Positions 10,855 to 62,346 of a stretch of DNA of 64,000 bases are shown here, piece by piece (the first letter of the stretch is position 1; each line of letters begins with the position of its first letter). Source of the DNA: Ylistrum balloti (taxonomy: Eukaryota); assembly GCF_031769215.1 (NCBI RefSeq), contig NW_026782097.1, positions 1,922,001-1,986,000 on the forward strand. The letters run 5' to 3'. The notes below the pieces were generated by a model that worked only from the letters and a program-made list of their open reading frames with translations, was not told the origin of the DNA and did no database searches. The position numbers and the translations under genes are program-made.

Positions 10855-10904
10855 GTAAGTAAATTACTTATTAATGCAAGTCTTATGTTTGTTTCTGATT
10901 GTAG

Positions 10905-27893: not shown

Positions 27894-27938
27894 GTAAATA
27901 ATCTCTATTTCGTCCTTATAGGACTCATCATTTATTGC
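27894..27938 (-). ncRNA. Degenerate hammerhead ribozyme motif
   Basis: Minus strand reads GCAATAA ATGATGA GTCC TATAA GGAC GAAA TAGAG ATT: perfect stem II and GAAA, but C3>A and the cleavage triplet is lost. Confidence 0.55.
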
Positions 27939-29439
27939 TATGACAACAGAATTAAAATATGGAAAAGCATATTGGGAACAAATAAAGATATATTTCACTA
28001 AAATATTTAACAACTTTTAATGTATATATATATATACATTGCTTACTATGTTGACGTATAATTTTTTAGCTAATACCACAATATTACAGGCTGGTTTTGC
28101 ACACGGGATAGACACGTCTGTCATTAAACGAGTGACTAAAGCAAGCCTTAGATTTCTTGCGGAGATATCGAACTGAGATCATACATCTGTTGGAGGTTGT
28201 TTCTGAGAACATCCTGATAACCCACGTAAGCAATTAGCAATCACTCAGAAGAACAACTACAATTCCTTTGCGTGAAAAGTGTTCTTTTCTCTCTTCAACA
28301 TACCCATCTCGCTCAAAATCTCCCAATTTAAAGCCATGAAAATGTAGCTTTGTTTTTTAATGCTTCTAAATGATAGATTTGTTGTCGGCGGTCCACTTAC
28401 TGATCACAGAACGGAGTCACCACAAGGTCATCCAGAGGTCACAGAGGAGAGAAATGAAACCTTTATGTAGCCTGCTAGTCTTGCCGCTTGTACATGGCTT
28501 GTCTTATTACTGTCTGATTATTACCTACAGGAAGACCGATTTCTTGCCTGGCCCAGACAGCTCACATTCACATCCCGAGGACCGTGGCAAGTTGACAGTT
28601 GATAAAGAGTATTCTGTTTGTCACAGATACCTAGGAAAAGAAATACAACATATTGGATGTACATGTTATCTGTTTCTAAGCATTCTAGATTATCTGAAAG
28701 ATGTTGGTCTATATGATAGACTATGACGTATCATCTTAATCTTTTGTGATGGTATATCCATTTGACACTGTTAACATTTGTCTTCCACCTTTTAATTTGT
28801 TTAATGTTATTTCCTTTATGGATCGCTGTTTTGTTCGGTTGATGGCCCTTATAACGTTTTATGTTTTGACAGGCCGTTAAGAATGTCATAATTTGTATCT
28901 AAGCAATCTAAACGGGTATCGTTATGCAATTGCATATATCTACTTTACTGTAATTACAATCATCAAAAGTAGTGCAATTTTAAAGACGATATCAATTATC
29001 ATAAGAGAAATAATCCACCACCATTGAACTGTGGTTGTATATAGAAAAGCGTCTGATAAGCCAAGTGTAACAAGACGTGAAAATATGAATATTAATCAAT
29101 CATGATTCTAAATTATGTATTCTAGCTTAAGACAATTATTATAATCACATCATTCACATTAAAAATGCTATTATAGCAAAGGTTCGACCTGTTTTCATTT
29201 TGTAGTTTTATTGTCAGTTTTTCTTAAAAAAGATGAGATGAACATTTTAGCGTAATGGCTGTAATGTGATAAAATGTTAACACACTTGTATATGTATACA
29301 TGACAAACATACATATTTTTTTGAAGTTATGAATTCATTGGGTTATTGATGTGTATATTTTATGAATTTGAATAATTGTGGATAATATTTTATATAGCGT
29401 TAGATAAGGTAGTGTATGTTTAGGATGAAAGTAAAGGGA

Positions 29440-30102
29440 TGTAAGCGGGGTTACTGGTCACTGTTGTATCGGTGTGAAATTATAGTGTTTGTATCACTGT
29501 TGTATGTGAAATTATAGTGTTGTAAGTCACGAAATTATAGTGTTGTAAGCGGGGTTACTGGTCACTGTTGTGTCGGTGAAATTATAGTTTTGTAAGCGGG
29601 GTTATTGCTCACTGTTGCATCTGTGTGAAATTATAGAGTTGTAAGCGGGGTTAATGGTCACTGTTGTATTGGTGTGAAATTATAGAGTTGTAAGCGGGGT
29701 TACTGGTCACTATTGTATCGGCGTGAAATAATAGTGTTGTAAGCGGGGTTACTGGTCACTGTTGTATCGGTGAAATTATAGTGTTGTAAGCGGGGTTACT
29801 GGTCACTGTTGTATCGGTGTGAAATTATAGTGTTGTAAGCGGGGTTACTGGTCACTGTTGTATCGGTGTGAAATTATAGTGTTGTAAGCGGGGTTACTGG
29901 TCACTGTTGTATCGGTGTGAAATTATAGTGTTGTAAGCGGGGTTACTGGTCACTGTTGTATCGGTGTGAAATTATAGTGTTGTAAGCGGGGTTACTGGTC
30001 ACTGTTGTATCTGTGAAATTATAGTGTTGTAAGCGGGGTTACTGGTCACTGTTGTATCGGTGAAATTATAGTGTTGTAAGCGGGGTTACTGGTCACTGTT
30101 GG
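29440..30102. repeat. 47/49-bp minisatellite (GTGAAATTATAGTGTTGTAAGCGGGGTTACTGGTCACTGTTGTATCGGT), ~13 copies
   Basis: GAAATTATAG recurs at 29821 and 29870; 47-bp variants lack one GT. Confidence 0.95.
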
Positions 30103-30113
30103 TTATCTTCGGT

Positions 30114-30365
30114 ACTGATCATAACGTTTAGTTGCAAATGCAATGTGTTAGTTGTCGGGGTTACTGGTCTTTAACGTGTTTTGAATGTTTTTTTCCCAAT
30201 ATTTGTTAATGGTCACTGTTGTATTGGTGTATTTTGATACTATCTGCGTGAAATTATATGTGCCTAGTAAGCGGTTATCTTTACTGATCATAACGTTTAG
30301 TGCAAATGCAATGTGTTAGTTGTCAGTCTTCAACGTGTTTTGAATGTTTTTTTCCCACAATATTT
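30114..30365. repeat. ~90-bp direct duplication flanking the satellite (30114-30205 vs 30284-30365)
   Basis: ACTGATCATAACGTTTAG(T)TGCAAATGCAATGTGTTAGTTGTC...AACGTGTTTTGAATGTTTTTTTCCC occurs twice. Confidence 0.8.
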
Positions 30366-39100: not shown

Positions 39101-40674
39101 CATTTGCGATGTATTTCTTGCATTGGGTACAGCGTTATACTTAGATGATGATGCTTTCAAATTGGAAGCAAGATTAATTTAGTAAACACCATTATCATAT
39201 TGTTACAAATTGGACAAAAAACTCGATGAATTACCGGTCATGCTTGTAATAGAGCACAGCTGAAATGACACGTGATTAACACGCGACGCTCCAAAACAGC
39301 CTTTTGAGTTGTTGCTATTCCCTTTTCGGGAGTATGATATAACATTTAGGGTTCTTGATTACATTAACCAAAATCATGACGTTATTCTATCATGTATGTT
39401 GTGGATGTCATATATACTTTACCTCTGAATGAAAAGATAGTGTTATCTTTGCCGATATCAAACTTAACATTAATAAAAAAAAATCTAAAACGAAAAAAAA
39501 AAAAAAAAAAACGCTTAATGGAAACAGATTAAAAAACATTTTTTTTTATTTAAATGAAATTTTCAGATGAAGTTCTATTAAAATAACAGTACTGTTCGAA
39601 CACATGAATGTCGCCTAGGAAATTATAATGCATTAATAAATAAATAAGTTGTTGCATAAATATTCGCACATTTGTAGGACTTAGTGTTCGGAGGATCTTA
39701 CCATGTTACCTTATAAGGACAAGATGATATAGATGACTTGTACATCACTTACTGATCTCAATTGTCATTTCTTTGGCCTAAGGCAGGAAAAAGTGAAACT
39801 TCTTATTATATCTGCACGAAAACGGACAGAAGTCTCTGCTGAATGCGAAACAGTTTCTACCCATTCATCAAGTGACTTTTATTTACAGATCGGTATTATA
39901 AGACACTTTGCCATTGACCATTAGCTAAAGATATGAAGACAAACATTGATTCCATCTTAGTAAAGTTCGTTTGGTTATGAAATTCGTATTCTGAACCTCA
40001 AAGAAACATCAAAGGGATTTGTCTTCTTGATATGTTTTTAATTTGACGTTGCCTAAAATACAAACGATATTTGTCATAGTTATGTCCTGACAGAAAATAA
40101 ATGACTCTAATAATAGCAAACCACAGATGCTCGCTAAATTACAGATCACAGATGGTTGTAATCTGAAGTGAAATAAAGGCGCGTATTGTCGAATCAATAT
40201 TTTCACATTCACTTCAAAAATCGAGCTGTAATCTTTATCTCGTTACGTATCCATCTGTGTGTGAAATGAAGACAAGCTACCTTGCCGTGAGTCTATTACT
40301 AATGAGATGGAACGACACAACAGCACGTGAAAGTGTAAAGACCACAACAGCTAACATGACATCTCACTGAGCAGGAAAACTTTGGTCTTAAAGGGAATTG
40401 ATCAACAAGTGTTTTTAAAGTAAATATGTAACTAAGAAATGATAGGGACAAACCACAAGAGATTCTACTTACAGTTGCTTTCACTTTCGCATACATGATT
40501 GTCTTTAGATTAATACAAAACCAATGATTTATCTAATTTAGTTGATAAGTGATTCTCTAACAGCGGGTCAACGGGACCGTCCGATAGAACTTTGAATGGT
40601 ACGATTAAGAACATAAACATCTATCTGACAACTTTAATATTTTCTCAGTCCCCTACTTGACTATAAGGTCCTAA

Positions 40675-40718
40675 ACATAACTGACGAATCCTAGAAGGAT
40701 GAAATAACTGCATGAGGA
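40675..40718 (+). ncRNA. Degenerate hammerhead ribozyme motif
   Basis: ACATAA CTGACGA ATCC TAGAA GGAT GAAA TAACT GCA TGAGGA: intact CTGACGA and GAAA, compensated stem II (ATCC/GGAT), but triplet GCA and broken stem I. Confidence 0.65.
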
Positions 40719-43700
40719 AGTTTAATTAATCGTATTGCAAATGCGGCACGTCTTTCTAGATTTGTATTTGAAGTCGTTTTTCATTTGTCTGCAGCTCGCA
40801 AAACTCTTTAGTTAAATGTCATTCTATATGAGATGCGTGATGAATCAATTTTACACAATTTTCGTATGATTTCTGGATTCTCTGCGTAAATCTTTCTTTT
40901 GTTCATAGCTATTGGATTTGAGTTTGGATTATGATTATATTCACATGGTGGTATTTTCCTGTTGTTTCCGTAGCAACCAAAATTATATAACATTTAGTTG
41001 TTGTTGCACCACGATTTCTATGACAGAAGTTCACTGCTAATTGTACATACCTACAATGTCTAGTTTCAAGTAATGCCAGTTGATGAAAGGTCATACATGG
41101 TTTGTAGGCACGTTTATAATCTCGCATGGATAATATTACACGTAGTAAAATTCATCAAATTCAAATATCGTAAGCATATTTAGCTTTCCAATTGATGATT
41201 TTGGTCTTTGGCACCTTTTAAGAGGCCTGGACGGTAAATGTTTAAAAGCTTCAAACTCTATCCGATGCAACACAGCACTGTTATATGGTTATATTCTAAA
41301 CAAGATTTCGATTTAACAAGTCATTACATTTTGATTTGAATAGATTCACTTTCTATGCAATATAAATATGTATAATCTAAAAATACACAGAAAAAAGTAA
41401 GATAAAATAAAATGTCGACAGAACCTTAAAACTCAAATTCATTGACACTACGACGAAAATTAACAGAGAAAATACACATAGACCCCGTATAAAGCATGTG
41501 GTTTAAAGTTTAGAATTATATTTAGATATTTCATATCAGGAATATCGTTTATCTTACACAGGTATTGTGTCTATATAGTGCATCTATATGAAACAAATCG
41601 AGAAGCATTTCTACACATACATATAGATATCCATTAGCGCACTGTGGCTACTGGTAAGTAGAACACTACAGACGCATTCCTAACTACCAATTTACTATAG
41701 AATCCACTTTATTGAATTTAACGGTTAATGTATTTACGGTGCGATACCTGTACTCTTCTGTGTAAATCCTTATTAAGGTTTTCTTTTTCTTTTTTTACGT
41801 CGGATCAATTTCCTCAGAACGTTCCAAGAAAATTCAATTAATCTTACGTTAGATCCACGCCAAAATCCTTAATTAATTGCAGAATATGTTTACATGCTGG
41901 GTACAGTTCATCTTTGTGTTTTTGGCTATCAAAAGCATGGACAACCCGAAAAGGGAAACTGTAGTTTGAATTAATTGAAACGTCGATATTTGCAACATTC
42001 TGCTCGCGTTGCGTCATTTGGCAGCTGTGCTAAGCACGACGAGATATAAAACCTCTACCGAGTCAACAAGTTAAAAGGTATTTTTCCAAAATCCCGAATC
42101 TTAAGCTAATTCGTAAACGACTGAAAAAGTAAATAACATCTTTGAAAAGGAATTATATATATAATCAGTACATGTTTACGTTATGAGATGTCAAGTTAGC
42201 AAGAAAGTTCATCTGGTGAAACATATTTAGATATATAGAGGATACATCTTCTATCCATAGTAAACAGTTGTACATTGCAATCACTAAAACAGAATATTAA
42301 TAATGTTATTTAGTAACCTTTGAAATTAAAAGCAAGCAACCAATTTTCCAACATGACGGAATATTACACATGTCAATTATGTATATCTGAGTGAAAGGCA
42401 AATAATGATTCTAGTGTAAATGAAATGACTTAAGGATATACTCCTCTGATCTTTGACCGGAACGAGAGTAAGACACGATTGGTTGTGTAATGAATCAACA
42501 AAATATAATGTTTTTAAGTCTTGTTATACTCTTGTTATCTATACTTGTACTTATGAACTGAAAAGTGACTATTCATATGCTTTTTAAAAAGTTATCGGCG
42601 GCTTCGTGAATCGGTTAATAGCATCAACAATTTCAACATTTTCTGGTTGATATGATACCTCTTTTGAGTATAAACTCTGGATTTCAACTACACCTTGCTT
42701 AAACTATCATCACAAATCACAGATCTTAAAATAGTAAACTCAAGTTTGATGGACCAATTGCCTTCTTTGTTAGGACCCGAACAATGTTTTAGCTTGTTTT
42801 GCTGACAATCTAGCTATTTGAGTGAAAATTGTAAAATTTTAAGCTCATTAACCCCGTCATTTATATCAAACGAATCTCTGAAAACTACCCTCAGCAAAAC
42901 TCAAAGCTACTAAAAAGTTCAATATTAGAAGATTGATTGCTTTGTAGTTTGAAGCTAATCAAATCAAAATCAAAACTTAATCTTAGCATTTTCACATCAT
43001 TTATTTCAATAACCAAGAATAATGATATTACCTTCTCATGAAAATGATTTTTCAAAAAAGGTTGCCGCGAAAATCACAAAAAACTATTGTAATTTGGTAT
43101 GTCAAACGTAATTATTTTTTGTTTGATATATCCCAAAGTCTCTTTCGGAAAAGAAATCATACAGCAACATATCATATTTTGCTTTCGATATTGTTTCTTA
43201 AAATCTTACATTTTAAACAATCATCATCAGGAAAAAAGTTTAAATCAGGATTTGTTTTTATTTCTCAAGGGCGTATATTTTTACACAGCTGTTAAAGATT
43301 TATGAAGGTCTGCTGGCGAAAAATTCTTGCAGCTAATTTTTGCTCTGAAGTTTTGAAAGGTTTTTATTTCAGAAAGAAATTTAAACTACATGTAAACATT
43401 GAACTGCTATTTTTTACTTCAGGTATCAGAAGAACAAACAGTTTTCATATACCATTCCTATTGATTTCCCTAAATCAACAGGCATTTTATATCAATTTCG
43501 AGGCTACCCCTTTTTAATAAATTCTAATTTTCATTAAAACGTTGACGATTGATGCTTGGATATTGATAATAAATAATATATAATATGATGATATGAAAGC
43601 ACTATATTTGCCAGTTAATTTCATGAGATTAAAACTGTTATGTTATCACTTTGAAAAATATCAAACATCCTTTCATTCGCCATGTTCTGGAAGACTTAAT

Positions 43701-45822
43701 GCTTAATGAAATTGATTTTTCTCACAATCAAATACAGAAAGAGTTAAGGAGCAAGTCGAAATATAAACGTTTGGGTCAAAAATCATTGGTAGTGGTCAAC
43801 CAATTTGGGAATATCGTATTTGATGTTCTGATTTGTGGTGATAATTCATGCAAAATGTTTTCGAAATTCTATCAAAACTTATATATATACTCAAAGAAGT
43901 ATCTTACCACGGGAGAAGCTGTGAATTTGTTGATGTTTTACATGAATATAGGATGTTCGGTTGGGAAAACGTTTCCACTGACTGTATGTTTTGTGATTTT
44001 GTGGATCATGGGAACTTCTAGAGTACTGCACAACTAAATTTATCAACATGTCAATTCTTGTGTCAACATAATGGTTTTACTCTATTGCGATGAAACGATG
44101 AAATAATTTTATCAAAAGACATATTTGTTTTTATGTCGATAATGTTATTGTCAACAAGGAATATTATCATTATTGTAATTTCATTCTCATCATGAAATAA
44201 ACGACGGCATAGATAGCAAATTGAACAGTGCGCTTACAAAACCATTTGTTTCATATCTACCTAAATGGCATTTTGTATTTTTGTTATGACACCAAACGAA
44301 TTGTGAAAGACATTGACTGGTTATGATAGTTGAAAACGTTACTAAAAAACGTTAAGTAGACACTATAACGATAATTTAATCACACATTATGAAATAGTAT
44401 CTTCACAATTCATGGCGTAAAAACAGTGTTAATTGCAACGAAAACGCTGTACCATGCAGTTTGATTCATTATTTGGCTATTTTGTATCGGATGTTTAATT
44501 TGTATTGAAGGCTGCTATTCACCTGGGTGCCCTTTTAACAGTCTTAGAGTTTGAGGGTGGTAGAGATTACTAACGGACTTTTAGTCCCTGAGGTTTCCAG
44601 GCATGGCACGTCTTAATTCATTTAAATTGCGGACGAATCAGAAAATCCACATGAACACGTACTTCTGTAATTATCAGATGAAAAAAAAAATTGATTTAAT
44701 TATACTATTTCTCTTGTGTATCTTTTGTACAATATGCGATATTATTCGACACAACACCATCATGTAAGACTGAAATCCATTAACACTTTTGATAGACCAA
44801 AACGGAATCCAGAAATCTGTAGCAAATTGAATTAGGAATGCTTTCTCTCAAATTGCATTTGCACATATCTATAAGGTTTTAGTCAACATGCTCCTGTTTT
44901 GTATACACCGAAAGATTGCACATTATAAATAACCTAAAATGGCACTAAAGAGTACACCGTAGGCCTATCAATGTTTACCATTTATACACGAGATAAGTTG
45001 TGTTAATGTTTCAAACTAAGCATCAAATGTCCTTATATACCGTATCATATATACTAAATTTGATTAAGTTTTATATTTGTCAGGCTATCTGACAGGATGT
45101 ATTGTTTTGCATGCGTTCTAACTCGTCAGTGAGACCGTGCATCGTCTGCATTTGGCGCCAAATATTTTCTTTTTGTGATGAAAGATAGAGCTTGGGAGAC
45201 AGCTATCTGCAAAAGTATATCTTATATACATTGGTGTGCTGTCATAGTTCACATAAATATGATAGATCGTACATCCAACAATTTTGTTAACTTTAAGAAC
45301 GATTGTATGTCACCATTTTGTGTGTCTAATAACAAGTCCGTGTTAATACAAAAACCTTAGTACCGAAACGAGCTATCGAGTGAATGCAAAATATGATATC
45401 AATATTGATAGGTCATTGGGAAAATGAGACACGCCCTTTGAACTTTGAACTTTTAAAGTGGTATATACTAGGAAGCTGTGAGGTCGGATGAATTGTGCTA
45501 ACGTCTGTATTAGACTGTACTAAATCTAAATCTTAGTTTGTATTAAGACGTGTTATTCACTTGTGTTCTTGTTCAATCGTTTGGATTGCAAGTATAGACA
45601 CTGTTCTTGGACTTTTTCCGAAAGTTTCCCTAATCTGCACGCTATTTTATTCATTTATTCGGCAAGGCAAGGTTCAGAATATACATATGTACTTGACATA
45701 ATGTTAATGAAAGTTACTAAATATATTTACTTATTCCGCTGGTACACCAATTAAGATGATGACCTTTCTTTCGATCAATTTTGATTTTTTTCTCATAATT
45801 CTCCTAGGTTTAAAGACCCTTA

Positions 45823-45866
45823 GCATCACTAACGAGTCATAGAGGACAAAACAGCTGTATAAGTTA
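45823..45866 (+). ncRNA. Degenerate hammerhead ribozyme motif
   Basis: GCATCA CTAACGA GTC ATAGA GGAC AAAA CAGCT GTA TAAGTT: G5>A and G12>A core mutations; palindromic ACAGCTGT retained. Confidence 0.65.
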
Positions 45867-46519
45867 TTTAAGTGTATCTAGTTCGGAATTTGTATTGAAA
45901 GGTATTGAAAGGTGTTATTCCAATGTAGTTTGTGTGACATATATAACCGTCGATAACAGATGGTACACACTGCTGATAAAGTATCAGTAGCTCAGGTTTG
46001 TCGTAACCAACATGCCAGCTTACTTTCTGCAAATATAATCGTTTTTTATTGAGTTGTTGGGCTAAAGACCTCCCCTCCAAGGTTTCACAATTTAGGCCCT
46101 TTGCACCACTAACGTGTCATTGAAGGAGAGAACAGCATGACGCAGTTTCATTCACCATATGGCTTTACTGTTTCTATCTCTAAATTTGTATTGAATAATG
46201 CTGTTCTTTTTGTGTTTTTGTACAATGTTCGGGTGGAGACATTGTTTGCTCTGTGCAAGCGTTCATTATGAATATATTTCAATCACATGTACGGGCATCA
46301 CATTTCAGGAGCAGAAACAACATGACGATGTGGAGTATCGCAAACTGAAGTCCGATAATTTCTCCCTTAAGCATTGTAAAATAAAAATAGCATTTGCATT
46401 GTGAAAAACATTCTTATCTTGGTTACTTTTTTCGTCGCCGTACGTCAGGCCATGTACGAAGGTACATTTCATTGTGCAAAAACGGTGTCTATATAGGGAA
46501 GCATATAAGCGATCAACGC

Positions 46520-47680: not shown

Positions 47681-48717
47681 GCTGTTCAAAAATTAATTGA
47701 TGCACGTGAGCGATTTGGCTAGCTATCTGCATTCCCCATCTTTCCTCCTTTGTACTATATACTCCCTTCTTCCCTCCTTACCTACCCTTCTTCCTACTCT
47801 TCAGTCCTTCCCTTTTGTTTCAATCAAAAATTATTATTATATATATGTTGTTTCATTGCCTGTTGTTTATACAATGCCATGGAGAGGGCTATATAATTTG
47901 GTAAAGCGTTTGCCCCATCCTGTTGTACGAACTTTCTGCACTAAAATAATCATTAAATGAAATCGTTAATATAAAAACAATTTATCACGCGTGACTATAA
48001 AGCGGGAATTCGGCTGAGTGAAACAATAGCATGCTGAATTGAACATTGAGGTCAGTTTCATTATACAAAACAAATTAGAGGAGACCACTTATCCAGAAAA
48101 AGTTAATGACACATTGATATGTATGGAATTTAGCATTCCAAAATAACCTAACGAATGATTAAAATAACATTTAACGTTCTTTGTAGTAAACCTACGAACT
48201 GTAACATTTGTTCACTTGTATACGTGTACCCTATTTTCTATGTTCCAGATGAAATAATATCACTATGACTGCGAAATCACATTCTATTTGAAGCTTTATG
48301 TGGTGCTAGTGACTTCCATTTGATAATTAGATAATAATATCACCGTAAGTGTAGCGATTAGGAGCTCGTGTATGATGTGGGTTCAAGATAAAGGTTTTTT
48401 TTTATACTGGAACGTAATAGGGGCAGTTATGAGAATTGGTCTAGAAATTTTCCGCTGCTTATGTAATCGGGAAGATCAAATTTCTGATGCCCTTGTTATG
48501 AATACGTTATCCTTTACATTCGGAGGTAGAAAATCTACAGCAACTGATGTATATATTTCCTGGTCAGTAAATGTCTTGTTTCCAGTATTGAGAGTTACCG
48601 CATTAGATGTTCTTAGACAGATTGCTCTCGGTTGATGCTTTGACAGCCCGTCTTGTATGCAATAAGGGAACTTACATTGTGAGGTTTACTCGGAAGCGAG
48701 TTGTTGCACCAGTACTT

Positions 48718-49260
48718 CGGAAACAGACACACGGTATTGTGAGTTGTTACACCAATGCTTAGAGAACAGACAGACGGTGTTGTGAGTTGTTACACTAGTG
48801 CGTAGAGAACAGACAGACGATGTTGTGAGTTGTTACACTAGTGCGTAGAGAACAGACAGACGGTGTTGTGAGTTGTTACACTTGTGCGTAGAGAACAGAC
48901 AGACGGTGTTGTGAGTTGTTACACTAGTGCGTAGAGAACAGACAGACGGTGTTGTGAGTTGTTACACTAGTGCGTAGAGAACAGACAGACGGTGTTGTGA
49001 GTTGTTGTACCAGCAGAGCAAGAACTGACATACTGTGTTGAGAGTTGCTGCACCAGTACATCAAGAACTGACACACGGTGTTGTGAGTTGTTGCACCAGT
49101 ACTTAAAGAATAGACATACTGTGTTGAGAGTTGTTGCACTAGTGATTCGAGAACTGACATACGGTGTTGAGAATTGTTGCACTAGTACTTCGATAACTTT
49201 AATGCGATGCTTCGACTTGTTGCGCTACTGATTTAGGAGATGACATATGGTGTTGCGAAT
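48718..49260. repeat. 43-bp minisatellite (GAGAACAGACAGACGGTGTTGTGAGTTGTTACACTAGTGCGTA), ~12 copies, degenerate at the edges
   Basis: TGTGAGTTGT recurs at 48781 and 48824; contains the palindrome CACTAGTG. Confidence 0.92.
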
Positions 49261-52200
49261 TTTAAACCGGTATTTCCGGAGTTGACACATCGTTTTGTCA
49301 TACTTTGTGTTGTGGGAATTGATATATGATGTTAGAGTTGAACTTTGTAAACGTTTGATCTGGAGTATTAATATTCTTTTCTGGTGATCTGTTTGTTTAA
49401 TTGTTGATATGAGAACTGAATAATATGCCTTTCTTTGGAATCTGAACATTCTGATGATCTTGTTATTGAGGGCTAGACTTGGAGTAAGTTTTTAATAAAG
49501 ACTTCGTAGAAGAAATGCCATTTTATGTTCGTCGATTTAAAAGGGCCTTCTTAGCTTTTCGTTGGAGTTTAAAAAAAAAATGGTTGTCTAAATAAAGACA
49601 CCTACGCATAGTCTAGGTCATTGACCATTTTATCAGCTATAAACTTGGTGACTAATTTTATCTACGCCTGAACCATACTTGAATCCCTATTTCGTGTCTG
49701 CTTGGTATGTTATCGGGTATCCCATCTGTCGCATTTGATGGTAGCAGCGACTAATACTTGCGAAAGATTCACGTGACACATTAGCCTTGTTAACAAATTG
49801 TTATCAGAAATGGACAAAAATGCAAATCGCAGGGTTGTTGACATTTTGTATGTTGTGAACTGCGTGCCGTTCGTGCCGTTGCATAACAGCAAGGTATTAT
49901 ATCTATCTCAAATAGTGATGTTTTTGCAAATTCTTCATAGCATCATTGTGGCGATACCAGTTTTGTCTATATTCATTTTTGTTCACCTGCTGTCTAGTGA
50001 CACAACTGATAGCGTTTGACGTCAGTTAAATTCCTCAGTAAGTTCAAGGATCAATGACTTGAAAATATTCTTAAATCGAATAGGGCAAATAGTAAAAACG
50101 CCAAGTATGCCAATGAATCCCAGGAATTCGAAAAACGTGTAAATGTGTGTGTGGTTATTATGTAATTTGAATAGATTGTAACCTTATCATTTATAGGTTT
50201 TACACGGCTAATTGTATTTTGTATTAAAAAAACCCTTTGTGAGCCGCAACCCATGATTAAACTGATATATCACAAACCTGCAAGCAGTTCCGTATCTTTA
50301 TGGTGCCCCAAACACCTTGCAACCCACCAGTATTTTCTTCAATCTGATGTGCAGTGTATAAAAAATGGCAAAGCCGGTATTTATTATGTCGGTTACGCTT
50401 TGAACCTCAACTAGTCAACATCAACTCTACATCAAATTTTAACAAAAAATTAAAAAGTTCGTTAAGGAAATATCTGATGATGGCAAATCTGTCGTTTTTT
50501 AAAAAGCGTGAAAAAGGTTACTGTAACTTGGAGTGAGATGTTACTACGACTAGTATACCATGTTTCCATAACGGAAGAAGATCACGAATGTTTGCACAAT
50601 TCTGTTACTCAAGAAAAAAAATAGGAAACTTTTGAAAACACGTGCACAGGTAGTACAATGAAAACAATATCACGTCTTACGAGAGAGTAGGTGTCAATTG
50701 ATGCACAGACAACTCCCGCAAGGAAAATTGAGGTTACACAGTATCAATATAACAATTTCAAATAAAAAGTAAGGTGCATGTTAAAACTATGTATGCTAAC
50801 GAAGATGACAAACCTTGCATGAACCATAACATCGTGAAATCGTTTGAGATGTCAATGAGATTATGTAGATGACCATGAAACATCACCGTAGTCGTTTTCT
50901 AAAGGCAACATACTTCGACGTAATTATAAAATCGAGTCAGTTTTGATATATCGATTTGTATTCCATTCTTACCTTCGGCAATTGTGAAATTATGACTAAT
51001 GATACAAGCTTTGGCGTTCAAAAAAATATCGCCACAACTAAGTAAAGTACAGATAAGAAGTAGCAATTATGTCAGTCATGTTGGAAAATGGTATTCATCG
51101 ATTGTTAGTCAACAATTCATACTCCGAAAGCCAATATTATTTCTAAATAGGATTCTCGATATTGTTCAATATTGCATAAAAGAAACTCGTGTAAAGAAAC
51201 ATGGTTTTCAAAATTATGAGTGTTCGTTATAAATCAGTGAGAAATATCGATTTCTCTGTAATGATCCAACACGGAATCGTTCACTTTCAGCAAAATGAAA
51301 GTGAAAAGATCTGGTAATATAATTATAACAAGTTATTTGCTTGTATGATACATGAGGGGAAAAGGATGGCCTATTCTGTTACATAAAAATTAATCATGAA
51401 ACATAGTTCATTAATCAAATGAAGCTGACATGGTGCAATTGAACGGTGTTCAAAACCAAGGTTCCATTCTGTCTTCTTGGGTAGAATCATGAAGTTGTAA
51501 TGAACAAGTAATATTACATAAAAAACGAACGCTTAAAATACATTTGTCTTTCTGAAACCGTGTATTAGAGATGGAAGCATGATATTCTAATTATTTCTAT
51601 TTTCTATTAGTTCTCAAGTATTGCAGAGAAATCAAGGTACTGTGTAAGTTTGAAAAAATACATATAGATTTGCAATAGGTACTGTAACGCAATGTAAGTG
51701 CATATCTGTAACGATACTTGTATTTTAATCGAACTCTGTTTGTGGCAAATACACTGTGAAACAAACACAAAATCTCATAACAAGATGTATTTCATCTAAA
51801 ATCAACAGTCGGTTTGGTGTTTCTGCAACAAACTAATATTCATGTAAACTCGGTATCTGTGATATCTGCTTAGTAATGGTAACATGTTTGCTGCCTTTCA
51901 ATTCTATAGCATATTCAAGTTGAAATCATCGTTTAAGTAGAAACGCACACAGGTATTTTTTTCGCTTACGGAACATGAGATCGGTACCTATTAAATGATA
52001 AAATATTCACCACCCACACCCCTTCTTTAAGATAAAATGAAATTGTATCATTCCAATTATATCATTACTTACGGTTTCTGATCTGTATCTGAAAAAAACT
52101 TTTCTTTGATTTGGATTTCGAAAATCAGGCTGTGAAAACATTTCTTAAGTGATGTGATGTCAAATATTTGACATCTTTATCATATTTTTATCATAATATG

Positions 52201-52927
52201 ATAATTCATAATACATAATATACTTTATACAGAAATAGATATAACACATAATATAAAAAATATTGTGTGTGCACATTTTTCGTTCATGGTTAAAACATGT
52301 AAAAACGTTCGTAGATAAACGCTGTGAGCCGTATCAGCATTGATTTGCTCATAAATGCGCCGCTCCATCTAGGCCTTTATATTCCTTTCGACTATTCTGT
52401 TTCTTTTAAATCACCTCCTAGACCTACTCATGTTAGATCGTACTACTGAATGAAATACTGTAGGATACAGTACATTACTAGGCGATACTGCATGTCATTT
52501 TAACTGTAAAATTGTAACTTTGTCATGTAATTTATTGTTCTGTTATTTGCTTTTTTAACCATCTTTGAAGAGATTGCAGGTAGTAGACTCTGAAATTGGA
52601 CTTTTATACTTTTATCTGCGATAGTTAGTGTAACTACATGTCCCGTTTGTTCTCTTACTAATAGTGACACGGTTCAGAATAAGCTTTACTTAATTTTCAA
52701 ATATGCAAATTTGAAACAACATCGAATTTATTGAATTGATGTAGGTGTACCTCTCTATGTTGGTGTTGACATTTCCTTTATGCCAATTTTGATTTGATTT
52801 GTTACGATTTAGACTCTTAGTATCACTGACCAATCCAGGAAAATTGTACATGGGGAGGGGGGGGCATTATAGCACCATTTAATAAAGATTTAAATAAATG
52901 TTGTTGAGCCTAACAGTGAAATATACT

Positions 52928-52971
52928 GAACCATACAACTACTTCGTCCTTCTAGGATTTATCAGTGATGT
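52928..52971 (-). ncRNA. Degenerate hammerhead ribozyme motif, flanked by + strand half-motifs at 52820-52838 and 52991-53012
   Basis: Minus strand: ACATCA CTGATAA ATCC TAGAA GGAC GAAG TAGTT GTA TGGTTC. Plus strand halves: GTATCA CTGACCA ATCC and GGAC GAAA CAGCT GTA TGATGC. Confidence 0.65.
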
Positions 52972-54139
52972 TAAGGCCCTAAATGTTGATGGACGAAACA
53001 GCTGTATGATGCATTTTAATAAACCATTATGATATTATGTAATACTATATGTTTTCCTAGTATTGTTGATATATATGTTTATTGCGATTATTTGTTCTTT
53101 GTCTACAGCTTTTTCATGTCTTATGTTCTTTTGATGTCCATTTTGTATTAACTTTTATTATCTTTAATTGTCTTTGTCAAATTAGAATTTTAAAAGTCGT
53201 ATGTACCAAGCTTATGCAGCATTAGATGGACATTAAGTCGTCTGAACTGCATGTACCCCGTTACTTAAATTCAGCACGAATGTCATGGTCTATTCAATAT
53301 GGTACCTTACACTGTGGCAGAGCTGTGGATGTGACATTATGTATGCAAGTGACGAACAATTATTCATTGTGCTTTTTCCTGGCCTTTGGTTAACCTACAC
53401 TAACTAGATATACAGTATAGTGCCGTGACATTCAGATCATCTTCGTGATTGTGTCTTGCTGAAGTTAATAACATCCCCATAGAACGAATGAAGGGTGTCC
53501 CCCGAATGCTTTATGATACGCACAGATCCAGATGTCTATGGAAAGTGATCCTTCTTCAACAAAATGCCAGGACAATGGTCTTTATAAGAAAGTGGACATC
53601 GACCTGCTATTCGCAATTATTTGTTTACGTGACAGTTCGTAACTACGTTACCTCGCTTTATCAATATCAGTTTGGTCATCACTTGTGTGGCCCAAGGACT
53701 TTGAGAGTGAATGCACACCCGAATAATTTACGTGCTGCTTTGCTGGAAGTGAGAAAGAAACGTCTATGGCATAAAAATAGGGTTTTAGTTCATGAATAAT
53801 TTAACTACGACTCCTGTCAGTTAAAGATTGTGGTGATTGTGGTTTTATTTGATGTGGTTTTAACTGTTTCTGATACCAGAGATTTATACAGTCATTTTAA
53901 AGGCACGTACGTATGTGGACACATGAAAATCACACCAAGTGGAGTATTATAAGACAAATTAATATCATATTTAGATAGATAAATATTGATATGGAAAAGA
54001 TCGGGATATGAAATAGAATTAAGAACGGGTCAAACTGGGAACACGAAATTTATTTTGTAGTTGTCACTTTTGGCCTCCTTTCTCTTGATCACTTTGAATG
54101 TTCTTAGTCGCCACCTAGGCTTTTTAAGTTAGGGCCTTA

Positions 54140-54183
54140 GCATCACTGACGGACTCTAGTAGGGCGAAATGGCTGTATGATGC
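54140..54183 (+). ncRNA. Hammerhead ribozyme motif (type I, minimal) with perfect stem I
   Basis: GCATCA CTGACGG ACTC TAGTA GGGC GAAA TGGCT GTA TGATGC: stem I GCATCA/TGATGC perfect, GUA triplet, A9>G and a weakened stem II. Confidence 0.75.
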
Positions 54184-54539
54184 AGTTTACTTCATTTTTT
54201 GACTGTACTGTATCTTACTCTTATTTATGAAAAGTTTACCATTCACTTGTGTGTCCATTGTACAATCTTTAAGATGGAAAGTGGTAGACACTGCTGGTGG
54301 ACTCTAAGTTTCCAAGGTCTGTCATAACCTGTACTCTACGTTTAGTTCATTCGAATAGTGGCATGGTTCAGAATATATACATGGTATTGACTTGTTCTAA
54401 AATACCTGATAAATGACAATTACGAAATTTATTTGATTATTGGATTGCTGCATCTCCCCGTCAAGATTTTGACCTTCTTTCTTGTGATCCGTTTGGATTT
54501 GTCTTAGTGACTTCCTGGGCTTCAAAATTCAGGCCCTTA

Positions 54540-54577
54540 GTATCATGTCCAAGAAGGACGAAACAGCAGTTCAATGC
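54540..54577 (+). ncRNA. Hammerhead-derived motif with the CTGAnGA core deleted (second copy of the tandem pair)
   Basis: GTATCA T GTCC AAGAA GGAC GAAA CAGCA GTT CAATGC; flanks align with those of the 54140 copy. Confidence 0.65.
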
Positions 54578-54799
54578 AGTTTACTTCATTGTTTGGCTGC
54601 ACTGTATCTTACTCTACATTATGTATTGTTGCTATTGTACATTACCACTGACATGCCTTCTTGTATTCGTGCCATGCAGAGATGACATAATCGTATATCA
54701 TGTGTCTATAAAACATATTTGAAACTATTTACACATTGAATCATGGATACGACTAGGCTTGATTGCTGATCTAGGTATACCTTTATAAGTTTCAATTTA

Positions 54800-55162: not shown

Positions 55163-55193
<31 letters not shown>

Positions 55194-57509
55194 CTGTAAC
55201 AAAGAAATTATTACTGAGTTTGACAAATAATGCATTATCGCTCCACTCCACAAAGTCACAACGGGTAACACTTTACCTTCACAATTAACACAAAATACTG
55301 CTTCGCAGATGAATTCACAAAGGCAAGTTGCCTTCTGAATTTTTCAACGAGGTCTTAGTTATACAAGCTAGATTCTTTTGTCGTCTTCGCGAACAAAGCT
55401 TTCAACAAGTTATGTAACATGTCCATTAGAATCCCATTTTATGTCCATCTTAGAACATTTATTGACAGGAAGATAGAGAAAATAAAAGATTAAGCATTCC
55501 AAAGATTGCGATTGATCTGTATCTTGCTATCCCATTTGCTTTAAGACCGAAAAAATACTGGTTAACACATTATATTCCCAAGGGTCGAAGCACAAAAGAG
55601 AGAAAGTAAACATGTTGTGATAAAGTCGGTAAGTCGGTTTAACCAATGTTGAGCATTTGTCATAGCAAACCACAGTATGAAGTAAATCAATGTTACTGCT
55701 TTCATTTTGTCCTTCTGTTGTAGACTTGCCATGTAACATTTAATGCTTTGGTTTTACAACACAGACCATCTAAATCACACCCGTTTATTTTCTTTTCTGT
55801 TTGTATCTGTGTTTCCCAATGGAATAAACATATAATGCATCGTGTAATATGCAGCATAAAGTTTCCCCTTCGGAGCTATCGCGTGCCTGTTTGGATGCCT
55901 AACGTCTTTAATATGTATTTCCCTTTGTGCATTCTCCAAATATAAGCATCATAACCGCGTAATGCTAAATGGTTTTATAACTGTTAGTCTACGAATGTGT
56001 CACTTAGTAACACCAAAGACTGCTTTGATTAAACTTCTCTTTAGTCACAAATACAGTTTCTTTGATATGTGTTGATTACCTTATGATTCCATCGAGTTCT
56101 TAACTCTAAGACAATGTCAGTATTTGTCATTCTAGGTTCGGTATGTAATAAAAATAAGTTTTCTTTTTTTGCGCAGTGACGCTCTATGTGACGACGCGGT
56201 TTGTGCGTGTATTATTTATGACCCGACATCTGAGACATCTTTCACACAGCTTGCTTTCGTCTAGCAATGCTTCCCTTGTGTCATTTTCTTTGTCCTGGCA
56301 GCCCTCATCATGAATCCGCGTATCCTCGTTACATACAATATGTCAGTTTCAACTTTTCGAATAGACATGCCCTTTATTTATCTGTACATTGCCAAATATA
56401 GCCTCGTTCATCCTGATAATGCGTAAATAGGTTATTAAGATGTTGTCGTCAGATAGAAAAAGAAAACGTGTCTAAACCTTGGTATATTGAATGATCATCA
56501 CCTACACCCTACTAGGTGACGTGTACATCTTTTTATTTCTGGTTTGGATTATGATTACGTTAAATTGGTATTTTCTTGTTGATGTTGTTGTTATTTTTTC
56601 AAGTCTAGACAAAACTACACGCATTCATGTTTTACATGTAAACAATAAAGTCGTAATTACATGCATGTTCATATATCTTGTTTGAATAGCATAAGGCATT
56701 TTTTCCTTTTGTTAATAAAATTCATTATATGAAGATAAAAGATCAAATGTGTGTCATGCATGCCATTTGTTATACGCAACTGCGCTTTTAAATAAGTCAT
56801 TTACTGTTAAATCTACGTTCCTTCTAGGTTTAAACATTTTTGTCCCAGCATCACAGAGGAGCCTCAGAAAGGCGAAACAGATGTATCATACAGTGTAATT
56901 CATTATTTGGCTCTACTGTATCAAATGTTAAATTTTCTAAAATTGTTTTGAAAGACGCTAAGCATTTGTGTGTCTTTGTACGATCTTTTAGCGTTATTGT
57001 CAATAGTGGGATTTCTGCTTTTTTTCATTATAACCCTTAAGTGACTTCTTGATAATTGTCACATTTTTTCTATTTGTCAACAATTTTTCTTTTCAAATTA
57101 ATGAGGTTTATTGATCTGTACTTGTTTTTTCCGGTGCAAGTTTTTTCACTTGTTCTTTCACAGACATATACAAACCTCTTTCCTAGAGCCTTCGTATGCG
57201 AGTATGCGTATGCTGGCCTCATATGCTTCCATCCCACTGTTCTTTTCCCTGGTATTTTTCTATGCGAATTGCTTTTTTATAAATCAGGACGAATGAGTAT
57301 CATCCATGAACATGTCATAACTCGACTAGATTATTCAACCAACTATAAATGATAAAGGATAAAAAAAGTCTTCCTCGATATCAGTTGTTTCTAAGAATAC
57401 CCCTGAATCATTCAAGGTATCATGAATATAGTTTTGTTATAAGTATGATTTAACTATGAATTTTCAAGCAACTTAACATCGATTGATCAACATTTAGAGG
57501 GACCTGAAA

Positions 57510-57730: not shown

Positions 57731-57944
57731 TTGAGAAAATATGTTGCTTCAAAACCATTAACCCTCAATAATAAAAACAGAAAGGATCATATCACAGGTA
57801 CAAGTCTACCTGCCTAGGAGTCAAGGGGCATATTTCTATTTGATCGGAAGTAGTGGCTTTGGATATTTTAATTTGGTTAGGAGATGTGGGTGGAGGGTCA
57901 TTTATATATGGCTATGGTTTAGGGTTAAGAGTATTTCAGTGATA

Positions 57945-59085
57945 GTTATGGGTTATGGTAAAAAGTTACTTTACTGATTATTTCTATGTAGTTATGGGTT
58001 GAGATAAAGAGTTACTTTATTGGTTATTTCTATGTAGTTATGGGTTGAGATAAAGAGTTACTTTATTGGTTATTTCTATGTAGTTATGGGTTGTGGTAAA
58101 GAGCTACTTTATTGGTTATTTCTATGTAGTTATGGGTTGTGGTAAAGAGCTACTTTATTGATTATTTCTATGTAGTTATGGGTTGAGATAAAGAGCTACT
58201 TTATTGATTATTTCTATGTAGCTGTGGGTTGAGATAAAGAGCTACTCTATTGGTTATTTCTATGTAGTTATGGGTTGAGATAAAGAGTTACTTTATTGGT
58301 TATTTCTATGTAGTTATGGGTTGTGGTAAAGAGCTACTTTATTGATTATTTCTATGTAGTTATGGGTTGAGATAAAGAGCTACTTTATTGATTATTTCTA
58401 TGTAGTTATGGGTTGAGATAAAGAGTTACTTTATTGATTATTTCTATGTAGTTATGGGTTGTGGATAAAGAGTTACTTTATTGATTATGTCTATGTAGTT
58501 ATGGGTTGAGATAAAGAGTTACTTTATTGATTATGTCTATGTAGTTATGGGTTGTGATAAAAAGTTACTTTACTGATTATTTCTATGTAGTTATGGGTTG
58601 AGATAAAGAGCTACTTTATTGATTATTTCTATGTAGTTATGGGTTGTGGTAAAGAGCTACTTTATTGATTATTTCTATGTAGTTATGGGTTGTGGTAAAG
58701 AGCTACTTTATTGATTATTTCTATGTAGTTATGGGTTGAGATAAAGAGCTACTTTATTGATTATTTCTATGTAGTTATGGGTTGTGGTAAAGAGCTACTT
58801 TATTGATTATTTCTATGTAGTTATGGGTTGAGATGAGATTAAAGAGATAAAGAGCTACTTTATTGATTATGTCTATGTAGTTATGGGTTGAGATAAAGAG
58901 CTACTTTATTGATTATGTCTATGTAGTTATGGGTTGAGATAAAGAGCTACTTTATTGATTATGTCTATGTAGTTATGGGTTGAGATAAAGAGCTACTTTA
59001 TTGATTATTTCTATGTAGTTATGGGTTGAGATAAAGAGCTACTTTATTGATTATTTCTATGTAGCTGTGGGTTGAGATAAATAGT
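57945..59085. repeat. 46-bp minisatellite (TATGTAGTTATGGGTTGAGATAAAGAGCTACTTTATTGATTATTTC), ~24 copies
   Basis: TGGTTATTTC recurs at 58021 and 58067; internal inverted repeat ATAAAG-AGCTA-CTTTAT. Confidence 0.95.
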
Positions 59086-60094
59086 TTCTTTAGTTGTAAA
59101 CGTTGTTACTTGATAGTTTAGTTTGTAGCGTATTGAGAGACATCTCTGCATGGCTGTAGAGTGAGGTTCAGGGGTATTTTTCTTTGCCGCAGAATTGTTG
59201 ATATATGTGTTCATGGATGGCAGATTACACGTATATTGGTCGGGAAATTTCGAGTCGAATTTCGGGGAAAATGATAAAACGACTTACCATTAAAATGGCT
59301 AGTCCCCTCGACAAAATGAGCTGTCGACAATAGATAGTTTATTCATTGGCTGGTTGTTATAATAACGCATTCCTTGATGTGTCTTATACATTTGCTTAAC
59401 AATATTTCAAAGGTTAAAAAGGTGCATAATTCTCTGTTGTTGTCATGAACAACCCTAACACCACTGAAATATATAGAAAAGGTTCACAGATATGACGCAT
59501 ATTTCATACATGTTGTTTTCGGCTGCATTATATAATCAACTATAATTTGAAGAATAATAAGCCTGCTGATTCACACCAGTAGATTTGAAAATCATCTCTT
59601 ATATTTCTACAGTATCATCGTCATCATCAGTGTATGTAATTGGAAAATTATTGTAAATTATCAGATATATGAAGACTGCCGCATTTATTGGATTATGGGG
59701 TTGGTGCAAATCCCGTTGTAAATGTTGAAATTTCTATAAAGTATGTTGTTTTTTCCTTAATCTTATCAGGATGTAGTTTAATTCATTTGACTTCAATGTA
59801 TCTGATTTTAAATGTGTGTCTGTTTTACAATCTGCATTTTTACGGTGTTCAGTGTGGAGGTAAATAATTTAATTCATATCAGGTTAAAATCAGCAACATG
59901 TTAAGGATGTAAATTTACAGGCATTAAACTGTTATGATGTGGCATTCATAGTCGCATTAAATGACAGAGCCTTCCAAGCAAATATCACATTGAGTGCAAT
60001 AACAAAATAAGATGCTTGCCTGTAAATTCATTTCGGTGTTTTAGATGTCATTAATCCGTTAAACGTAAATAATCTTTTTTACACACATCTGTCT

Positions 60095-60212
60095 CAATAG
60101 TTCCCTGGTCTACACGGGATCATGTACAGTCCACACAATAGTTCCCTGCTCTACACGGGATCGTGTACAGTCCACACAATAGTTCCCTGGTCTACACGGC
60201 ATCATGCACAGT
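60095..60212. repeat. 41-bp tandem triplication ~165 nt upstream of the 45-nt exon
   Basis: CAATAGTTCCCTG at 60095, 60136 and 60177. Confidence 0.85.
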
Positions 60213-60376
60213 TCTCTAACATCTAAACGTGGTCATTATAAATTATAATTTTTTGATATTATTATTGATTGATTTGTTGTAAACGCCACGTCTTGTGTCG
60301 CCATGATTGTTTTTTCATACTTTCTGTGTATTTCTATATAAAAATAAAAAGCTAATATATGATTTTATAATTTCAG

Positions 60377-60421
60377 GATGAAGTTAACCAAGTATTAACG
60401 ACTAATGTTTGGCTGGAACAG
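60377..60421 (+). CDS. Nicotinic acetylcholine receptor subunit, conserved 45-nt exon (beta1-beta2 loop to loop D)
   Basis: TTTCAG|GATGAAGTTAACCAAGTATTAACGACTAATGTTTGGCTGGAACAG|GTATGT = DEVNQVLTTNVWLEQ, matching alpha7-type DEKNQVLTTNIWLQM in sequence, length and phase. Confidence 0.95.
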
Positions 60422-61711
60422 GTATGTAATATATATAATTTTGTCTATAGATTAATACTCAATGTATCACTACTGTACAGCACAAACTAGCTCTTCAAAC
60501 CATCAATCAATTAATTCAATGACAATTCATGCCCATTAGTGAAAATATTTGTTCTGTAATAACTACCAACATTAGAGCTATTTCCAATGCGTGAGAAAAA
60601 CAATTACGGGGTCACGAAGTTTATATAATTTTTTTTTAATTTTTAACTTGTAAAGCATTAATTTCTTTTTTCCAATAATAACTGTAAGGGATCCCACATA
60701 TTCTATAGTAAGGACGAGTTATATAGTTACTAAAGAACCGCACAGTTAACGGTTATTTTCCCATACCGTCAAACAAATGGTAATTTTCTAGACCAATGAC
60801 TGCTTCCGATTTAATTCTGTCCTCACTTTTACAACGAAATGTCCGTATTTACATAATTGTGCAGTTGTGAGTACTTACTCTTATTACGTTACCGAAGTAA
60901 TTATAATAATGGCTGGGGATTAGGGAACCTCTTTTCTGATCAAGGGATGCAAAGCAACGTTACGGTTATAACCGAGGGATTTGGCAGCAACAACCATTCC
61001 GTTTTATTTCTTCCATTAAGTTTATTTATTATAGTTCACTCAGCTTTTAGCACGAACAATGCACATTTCTCCTCACAAATTTTGACATAGAGTAATTTGC
61101 CGGTCGATTACATCTGCAGTTTGTGAACTGAAACTTTGCATGGGCTTCAAAATGCATTCTTGCTTAAACACCGTTGCCTCTATGCTGCAGACGAATGAGA
61201 CATTTATTCGACATAAATTGACTTCCGGGCATTTCAAATCATCAAAAATGGTTATTTTAGAAAGATTTTACAATGCCGTGCATTATAGTGAATAATTCAA
61301 TATTCTATCGATTTTATTATTCTGTGTAAATTAAATCAATGGAGCTTATATGGAAAACCTGATATTTCTTTTCCAAATAGTCTGTTGAAATCTACCTTAA
61401 AATGATGCCGGCCATACATCGAAACACGCAGTCATTTATTCATTGACATAGTATCACAAAAAGATTACTGTCTAACCTCATACAGAATAATGTTCATTAA
61501 TGTTGTCACTGAAGAGAAATTCATTACCTGCTAAAAGCATATGTATGACCTCTTACAGATTAGTGGACACCCGCAGAATGACACCCCCTTAAACATACAC
61601 ACTTATTATTAGTGTGTGACCCCTGCAAGATAATAATTGATATCTGTGATAGGTGACCCCTTGTAACAGACTAACGTATGACGTACGGACCCACTCTCCC
61701 ACACACACAAA

Positions 61712-61866
61712 NNNNNNNNNNNNNNNNNNNNNNNNNNNNNNNNNNNNNNNNNNNNNNNNNNNNNNNNNNNNNNNNNNNNNNNNNNNNNNNNNNNNNNNNN
61801 NNNNNNNNNNNNNNNNNNNNNNNNNNNNNNNNNNNNNNNNNNNNNNNNNNNNNNNNNNNNNNNNNN
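61712..61866. other. Assembly gap (155 N) next to a CA-repeat
   Basis: Run of N. Confidence 0.99.
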
Positions 61867-62302
61867 TCTCATTAATGTCTGAACCTGTAAAGACATATAG
61901 ACTTATACGTGGACGTCAACAGACGTCTTGTCGACTGGTGTGTGACACGTTGCAGACTGTTTTATGATCATGCCCCTACTCCTCCAACAGGTCTAGATTA
62001 ATGTGTTCTATGTGACCTCCTGCAAGACATTGAGGAACGAACGTGTGACTTCCTTCCTATAATTATCAACACGTAACTCCCTGGGTATTACTATATATAA
62101 CAACATGCTAATTCATATATAACCTTGGAAGAATGCTATTGGACTGCTTTAAGATTATTGCTTTACATATTGGAAATTGAAACTTGACCTTATAGACTGG
62201 GAAATTTAATCTAAGATTGTACGTATGAAACACAATAAGAAACATACTTGAAAACAAATTAATTTTGAATCAGATAGAGAAGACTCTGATAATTAATTAA
62301 CT

Positions 62303-62346
62303 GCGTCATACAACTGTTTCGTCCTTCTTGAGCTCGTCAGTGATGC
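62303..62346 (-). ncRNA. Hammerhead ribozyme motif (type I, minimal) with intact catalytic core
   Basis: Minus strand: GCATCA CTGACGA GCTC AAGAA GGAC GAAA CAGTT GTA TGACGC. All core nucleotides are present, stem I is 5/6 paired, stem II is imperfect, and GUA cleavage is predicted between 62309 and 62308. Confidence 0.8.

Follow-up and report, generated by a model that had tools for sequence, protein, structure and literature searches.

Retrozymes without long terminal repeats (non-LTR retrozymes) are repeats of 150-450 bp, AT-rich and non-coding, each of which carries a type I hammerhead ribozyme and is expressed as a unit-length circular RNA, according to the passages of PMC7229834 used for this comparison. 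In the same passages the mussel Mytilus galloprovincialis is reported to contain ~5,000 motifs in repeats of 350-390 bp, which are expressed as circles, and Penelope-like elements are proposed by Cervera and de la Pena 2020 as the mobilising partner. The present study deals with a family of hammerhead-bearing repeats in the bivalve Ylistrum balloti and with its representatives in one stretch of 64,000 nucleotides (assembly GCF_031769215.1, contig NW_026782097.1, positions 1,922,001 to 1,986,000), hereafter called the window. About ten old, broken retrozyme copies are found there in the introns of a gene for a Cys-loop (nicotinic-type) receptor.

Several other systems are close enough to be considered. 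The canonical metazoan type I motif was defined in PMC4209133 exactly as it is seen here, and the 'minimal' motif of the Penelope type lacks helix III. The insertions of Penelope-like elements are recognised by frequent 5' truncation and by partial tandems forming pseudo-LTRs (Craig et al., PMC8557442), and non-autonomous Penelope derivatives with a common 3' end have also been described (PMC8557442). Passages of a 2026 preprint (10.64898/2026.07.22.740005) relate the retrozymes of vertebrates to Penelope pseudo-LTRs and report an avoidance of introns in frogs.

The motifs in the window are best explained as dead relics of a 397-nt non-coding non-LTR retrozyme that most likely owes its mobility to the reverse transcriptase of a Penelope-like element, and we estimate the probability of this reading at about 0.88. 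Elements of this kind have already been described in mussels, corals and amphibians; the finding is real and ordinary, and another family of a known kind is added by it. As in the Mytilus retrozymes of the passages cited above, helices I, II and III of the type I hammerhead measure 6, 4 and 2 bp, a palindromic tetraloop closing helix III, and the non-coding AT-rich units of 350-400 nt occur in thousands of copies, head-to-tail and alongside Penelope-like elements. Unlike the Mytilus elements described there, the repeats of Y. balloti are mostly single or partial units (up to 1.6-2.2), not long tandems, and their predicted self-pairing is unexceptional. RNA circles, which have been described for Mytilus, are assumed here by analogy.

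The family in the genome and the anatomy of its unit

The genome searched was the 648-Mb assembly containing the window. A 27-base core pattern gave 3,238 exact matches in it, compared with 0 for the reversed control, and a first look brought 1,112 candidates with the hammerhead and its flanks as the query and 1,139 with an internal query of 150 nt. Intact genomic members fall within the Rfam family RF00163, with scores of 34.1-41.6 bits against a gathering cut-off of 34 and with all core residues and helices aligned; in dispersed copies at two loci (L005, L009) the consensus is perfect and the score is 34.1 bits. The sequence of these matches above the cut-off is exactly the consensus GCATCA...TGATGC that had been drawn up in a first-pass annotation of the window. 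The genomic Rfam matches are either single motifs between ...TTAGGCCCTTA and GTTTAATTCATTG... or head-to-tail arrays with a step of 45 nt.

Where one copy contains more than one hammerhead, the spacing is 393-397 nt (L002, L003, L024, L006, L014), and it is 400 nt in the window pair 54140/54540. The unit is thus 397 nt long, with 38.7% G+C, one type I hammerhead and no conserved open reading frame (ORF), and in size, composition and content it corresponds to the non-LTR retrozymes as delimited above (150-450 bp, non-coding, low-GC, one type I hammerhead). A shared unit of at least 250 nt had been proposed in the first-pass annotation; the sharing was correct and the size is hereby revised.

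On a 397-nt unit with the first base of the hammerhead as position 1, 62 genomic alignments with a minimum length of 150 nt were placed; the 3' ends of 34 of them fell at unit positions 120-136, including 14 exactly at 129, in ...TTTTGTACAATCTT. The 5' starts were scattered from position 4 to position 395, with lengths of 169 to 647 nt. The common 3' end, ...GTACAATCTT, is situated 91 nt past the cleavage site. This sequence had been listed earlier as a landmark of the shared downstream flank, and it is indeed shared, being in fact the actual 3' terminus of the element. Five copies in the window terminate at the same GTACAATCT, and three internal window junctions run head-to-tail into TTAAGATGG...GGTAGACAC. 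The sampled genomic copies reach up to 1.6 units (1.5-1.6 in L002, L003 and L024) and the window copies 2.2 units, head-to-tail tandems of 1.4-2.2 units being present in the window. A Penelope-dependent element is expected to combine just such a fixed 3' end with frequent 5' truncation and with partial tandems, and the insertions have the geometry of target-primed retroposition. The proposal of a high-copy, hammerhead-bearing retroelement family is borne out by the core matches, by the Rfam scores and by this geometry.

The abundance of tandem structures brings to mind an ordinary satellite or minisatellite with a hammerhead-like motif, spread by unequal crossing-over or segmental duplication. 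The hammerhead itself is found in 45-bp arrays, an internal 49-bp minisatellite exists at two loci (L066, L080), and tandem repeats are abundant in the window. This origin is nevertheless highly improbable in view of the single copies, which number in the thousands, are dispersed over hundreds of contigs and have one sharp 3' end and variable 5' ends, and in view of a nested insertion. The arrays are situated inside dispersed elements and are therefore secondary expansions.

The arrays deserve a description of their own. The 44-nt hammerhead plus one A has been expanded within retrozyme copies to head-to-tail arrays with a period of 45 bp (52 bp in one case) and as many as 29 units, located on other contigs (L006, L014, L022, L031-L059, L062, L063 and L068). 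Among 339 array units in total, 317 are of 44 nt, and 57 of these 317 are structurally intact. The 49-bp minisatellite corresponds to unit positions 115-163 (L066:1339-1481, L080:1648-1989); since it spans the junction between the 3' end and the 5' start, its origin lies in copies of more than one unit.

Small size, lack of coding sequence, 5' truncation and a fixed 3' end would likewise be expected of a short interspersed element (SINE), which RNA polymerase III transcribes and a long interspersed element mobilises, and a run of four T does stand near the 3' end of the unit. We consider such an identity just as improbable as a satellite origin: ARAGORN found no tRNA-like head at 8 loci, full copies matched neither 5S nor 7SL nor any other Rfam family, an A-rich or microsatellite tail is absent, and copies of more than one unit are unexpected for SINEs. 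The SINE reading was rejected on the absence of a tRNA-like head and of any other Rfam family.

The probable Penelope-like partner and a proposed life cycle

Penelope-like elements co-occur with the retrozymes in this genome, in which 51 GIY-YIG matches were found, several of them in open frames of 669-755 aa. The element at locus L091 (G000:C422:251400-256800; GIY-YIG matches at C422:240415-261997) is a tandem Penelope-like element with a period of ~5.36 kb, comprising a 700-aa open frame with RVT_1 and with GIY-YIG at its C terminus, and an upstream frame of 485 aa. At ~1510-1560 of L091, upstream of the ORF, a hammerhead-like motif with a palindromic ACUAGU was noticed by eye; it is unrecognised by Rfam at E<=1 and unconfirmed. 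A Penelope 3' repeat that had been mentioned earlier as present elsewhere in the window was not found, the window having no ORF of at least 152 aa and nothing that matches L091, the one Penelope-like element compared.

It could be asked whether the copies are solo pseudo-LTRs or 5'-truncated ends of an autonomous Penelope-like element and not an independent non-coding family. The 3'-proximal hammerhead, the 5' truncation and the partial tandems are all features of Penelope insertions (PMC8557442), a truncated copy before a full one and target duplications that are hard to discern complete the likeness (PMC4209133, PMC8557442), and the genome carries genes of the Penelope type for reverse transcriptase and GIY-YIG. 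However, long copies cycle back into the 397-nt unit and do not lead into upstream coding sequence (L002, L003, L024; window 54077-54650 and 45508-46226), and the internal 150-nt query yielded about as many candidates as the query with the hammerhead and its flanks. Unlike Penelope-like elements, the retrozyme unit has no ORF for reverse transcriptase and GIY-YIG, it carries a canonical hammerhead with helix III and not the minimal hammerhead ribozyme, and it is not similar to L091, the one such element of the same genome that was compared. An origin from the ends of an autonomous element therefore seems unlikely to us.

For the retrozyme, going beyond the directly observed family with its copy number, ribozyme signature, fixed 3' and variable 5' ends, partial tandems and nesting, a life cycle may be proposed by analogy with the described retrozyme family. 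A transcript with at least two hammerheads would self-cleave after GUA, where positions 38 and 39 of the unit meet, and the 397-nt monomer would be circularised by the host tRNA ligase. The circle, or an uncut multimer, would be copied into DNA by a Penelope-type enzyme at a nicked target, and copying would have a fixed starting point, 91 nt beyond the cleavage site (...GUACAAUCUU). Synthesis would halt at variable points and would sometimes pass one or two hammerhead sites, giving rise to copies of more than one unit. It is conceivable, if rather doubtful, that reverse transcription of circular RNA underlies the geometry of the insertions, with one internal start of complementary DNA (cDNA) 91 nt past the cleavage site and a read-through of 1-2 sites. 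Ordinary partial-tandem insertion of the Penelope-like kind fits the sharp cDNA start and the read-through of ribozyme sites equally well as a circular or multimeric RNA template.

A number of observations weigh against assigning the repeats to a retrozyme moved by a Penelope-type enzyme. Target-site duplications were not detectable around 28 copies, the longest word shared by the flanks having a mean of 5.3 versus 5.5 in mismatched pairs. The retrozyme unit and L091 share no sequence, and in the comparison with this one Penelope-like element no partner with matching ends was found. Most copies do not exceed one unit, being monomers or partial ones, not long tandems. The sampled copies are ~80% identical pairwise (maximum 87%) and are old; with such an identity the family may be extinct. 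The whole 397-nt unit folds no better than shuffled sequence (z -0.9 and -1.3), and the mussel circles are described in passages of PMC7229834 as highly self-paired; the consensus fold of 19 copies was weak and contained no covarying second hairpin. Finally, transcription, cleavage and circles are here presumed by analogy.

Copies in the receptor gene, their structure and decay

A search of the 64-kb window with the consensus core, allowing up to three mismatches, gave 3 matches, compared with 0 in 100 shuffles. Two models were derived from genomic copies. The family covariance model R1 was built from 43 distinct, structurally intact hammerheads from elsewhere in the genome and was run unfiltered over the 64 kb; its scores are given in Table 1, and the next-best match in the window reaches only 13.9 bits (E 0.07). 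The element profile, a hidden Markov model of 19 genomic copies (nhmmer), found 16 fragments in the window at E<0.01.

In the first-pass annotation seven near-full motifs and two halves with shared flanks had been listed. All nine sequences read as described there, and the fragments found by the profile show that the shared flanks are real; the motif at 27894- is the sole one without a recognisable element flank. Further relics, absent from that list, are located at 56848+, which was added by R1, and at 46103+ and 44438+. The profile-detected fragments 2191-2268, 44438-44701, 46071-46226, 56820-56986 and 59651-59762 were also unlisted.

Table 1. Retrozyme copies and neighbouring features of the window (positions within the 64,000-nt stretch)
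Feature	Positions	Strand	Evidence and remarks
3'-terminal retrozyme fragment	2191..2268	+	nhmmer 328-402, E 2.5e-10; ends GTACAATCT; outside the range of the first-pass annotation
Two alternative first coding exons, Cys-loop (nicotinic-type) receptor	10654..11080	+	Pfam PF02931 positions 1-42, E 8e-6 and 2e-5
Hammerhead relic without element flanks	27896..27933	-	R1 26.8 bits, E ~4e-6; missed by the element profile
Element fragment, hammerhead relic 40675-40718, helix II AUCC/GGAU	40631..40738	+	nhmmer 225-338, E 8.8e-15; R1 35.4 bits
Fragment across a head-to-tail junction (3' part, then 5' part of the next unit)	44438..44701	+	nhmmer 299-402, then 2-176; begins within a hammerhead 3' half
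About 2.2 tandem units with internal deletions; relics 45823-45864 and 46103 (the latter heavily decayed)	45508..46226	+	nhmmer 331-401, 6-384, 8-76, 243-400; R1 32.6 bits (45823+); ends GTACAATGT
Older copy, 5' part to hammerhead loop 2 (5' half 52820-52841)	52571..52841	+	nhmmer 7-296, E 7.5e-16
149-nt 5'-truncated nested copy, relic 52930-52971	52842..52990	-	nhmmer 256-376, E 1.7e-18; R1 32.9 bits; ends GTACAATT
Hammerhead 3' half of the older copy and start of its downstream part	52991..53022	+	nhmmer 293-328; R1 19.6 bits (3' half ending 53012)
1.4-unit head-to-tail copy; relics 54140-54183 and 54540-54583, 400 nt apart	54077..54650	+	nhmmer 211-402, then 2-377, E 3e-43 and 5e-82; R1 46.6 bits (54140+) and 25.1 bits (54540+ copy, partial match 54547-54570)
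5'-truncated copy, relic 56848-56891	56820..56986	+	nhmmer 246-402, E 8e-23; R1 39.2 bits; ends GTACGATCT
Internal element fragment without hammerhead	59651..59762	+	nhmmer 132-244, E 9e-9
Receptor exon 2 DEVNQVLTTNVWLEQ, 45 nt	60377..60421	+	AG acceptor, GT donor
Assembly gap, (CA)n on its left edge	61712..61866	.	sequence reading
Full-unit copy with deletions, relic 62303-62346	62214..62550	-	nhmmer 2-402, E 7.5e-37; R1 54.8 bits; ends GTACAATCT

The two halves at 52820+ and 52991+ are present as reported, but they are not separate: they constitute one hammerhead interrupted in loop 2 (GTATCACTGACCAATCCAGGAA at 52820-52841, GGACGAAACAGCTGTATGATGC at 52991-53012) by the nested 149-nt copy on the opposite strand, which begins at about unit position 379 and ends GTACAATT. 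The pre-insertion sequence is supplied by the family itself, and it shows that the nested copy was inserted with neither a duplication nor a deletion of the target. The site 52820-53012 is thus a natural 'empty site' against which the mechanism of insertion can be controlled.

The host gene lies on the + strand, and its first exons match the start of the ligand-binding domain of neurotransmitter-gated channels. Exon 2 is situated ~49 kb past the first exons, and the copies at 27.9-59.8 kb are therefore within intron 1 (~49 kb). Relative to the receptor, 9 of 12 fragments are in sense and 3 of 12 in antisense orientation. All the motifs had been placed inside receptor introns earlier; this is correct for the copies in intron 1; the 62303- copy lies beyond the assembly gap. 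The gap touches no copy, the nearest ones being 59651-59762 and 62214-62550, and continuity across it matters solely for whether the 62303- copy belongs to the same gene. The (CA)n run at 61690-61711 is a likely cause of the break in the assembly. Five unrelated minisatellites of 5 to 19 copies are located in the same introns, at 29531-30101 (period 49 bp), 48696-49261 (43 bp), 57943-59092 (46 bp), 62913-63245 (35 bp) and 27000-27191 (34 bp).

None of the window copies is an intact ribozyme, and a defect of the core or of a stem is present in each. The best-kept hammerhead, 62303-, has an intact core; its helix II contains a single C-A mismatch and its helix I a single A-C mismatch. In 54140+ the core reads CUGACGG and helix II is mismatched, and in 54540+ the CUGACGA box has been deleted. 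The cores were changed to CUAA and AAAA in 45823+ and to CUGAUAA and GAAG in 52928-. In 27894- CUGA is replaced by AUGA, and helix III and the cleavage triplet have been lost. U16.1 has become C in 40675+, where helix I is degraded; the compensated pair ATCC/GGAT, pointed out earlier at 40688, is real but is located in this copy, which is dead for other reasons.

In agreement with such decay, the Rfam hammerhead models, which had been suggested as a check in the first-pass annotation, gave no match in the window, neither at the gathering score nor with a threshold of E<=10, and a relaxed structural descriptor found no hammerhead in it. The window copies consequently stand outside RF00163 as defined by a score of at least 34 bits, CUGANGA and GAAA cores and helices I-III. 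Since every window copy has lost nucleotides of the core or of a stem, none of them is expected to cut the pre-mRNA of the receptor.

The structure of the intact motif was studied on the consensus. For the 44-nt monomer a non-hammerhead fold (-13.6 kcal/mol) is predicted to be favoured over the hammerhead (-7.8 kcal/mol). For two molecules, or for two adjacent array units, the double hammerhead is the predicted minimum-energy structure (-33.3 and -30.3 kcal/mol), in which the palindrome ACAGCUGU pairs as an 8-bp helix III. Cleavage as a dimer, suggested earlier, is thus upheld as a thermodynamic prediction of the double hammerhead, whereas an obligate dimer stands in contrast to the passages of PMC7229834 on invertebrate motifs, according to which most hammerheads of invertebrate retrozymes self-cleave efficiently and those of vertebrates must act as dimers. 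No signal of selection for a dimer-compatible loop was found, AGUU occurring in 6 loci versus the incompatible AACU in 5. The designation of the motif as 'minimal', of the Penelope type, had to be abandoned in favour of the canonical metazoan type I described above. Newt satellite 2 and the axolotl retrozymes are similar in being hammerhead-bearing repeats (~330-350 nt) with a palindromic helix III that permits the double-hammerhead fold. They differ in that helix III of the amphibian motifs consists of a single base pair and dimers are required for their cleavage, while two pairs are present here, as in invertebrate motifs.

Covariation in stems I and II, the lack of which had been proposed earlier as a refutation, was marginally above the controls and is a weak test for dead, star-like copies. 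Among 90 distinct copies, 8 pairs with double-sided change were counted versus 4.2 expected, and the score was 0.147 versus 0.130; the clearest series (G-C, G-U, A-U) was found at the closing pair of helix I. In the dead copies of a single family, such covariation speaks neither for nor against the structure.

Relatives and significance

More distant relatives are the LTR retrozymes of plants (PMC4918200), which are also non-autonomous and ribozyme-bearing, have direct repeats each with a hammerhead and propagate via circular RNA. They differ in that their hammerheads are of type III and that they possess true LTRs, a polypurine tract and a primer binding site, show 4-bp duplications and depend on Gypsy elements (PMC4918200). 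None of these plant-type features was seen here; the duplications were not above background, and the primer binding site and the polypurine tract were not explicitly searched for. A sharp 3' terminus shared by the copies, 91 nt beyond the cleavage site, has been documented for the present family and is unmentioned in the passages of PMC7229834 and of the 2026 preprint used here. A literature search found no paper linking hammerheads with scallops, and it is plausible that the family is uncatalogued in this taxon, as had been suggested.

Summarizing the data on these elements, it may be concluded that a bivalve family is added to the catalogue of animal retrozymes. For the annotation of the receptor gene, the elements are to be regarded as harmless relics. 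Retrozymes occur commonly in the long introns here; most of them are sense-oriented, though inactivated, and their presence contrasts with the intron avoidance reported for frogs. The sharp 3' terminus and the read-through of ribozyme sites provide a handle on how enzymes of the Penelope type copy such RNAs and create partial tandems. If reverse transcription of circular RNA did prove to underlie the insertions, the partial tandems of the Penelope type (pseudo-LTRs) would result from running round a circle made by the ribozyme, not from template jumps, and this bivalve family would be a tractable system for testing the origin of partial tandems from circles.

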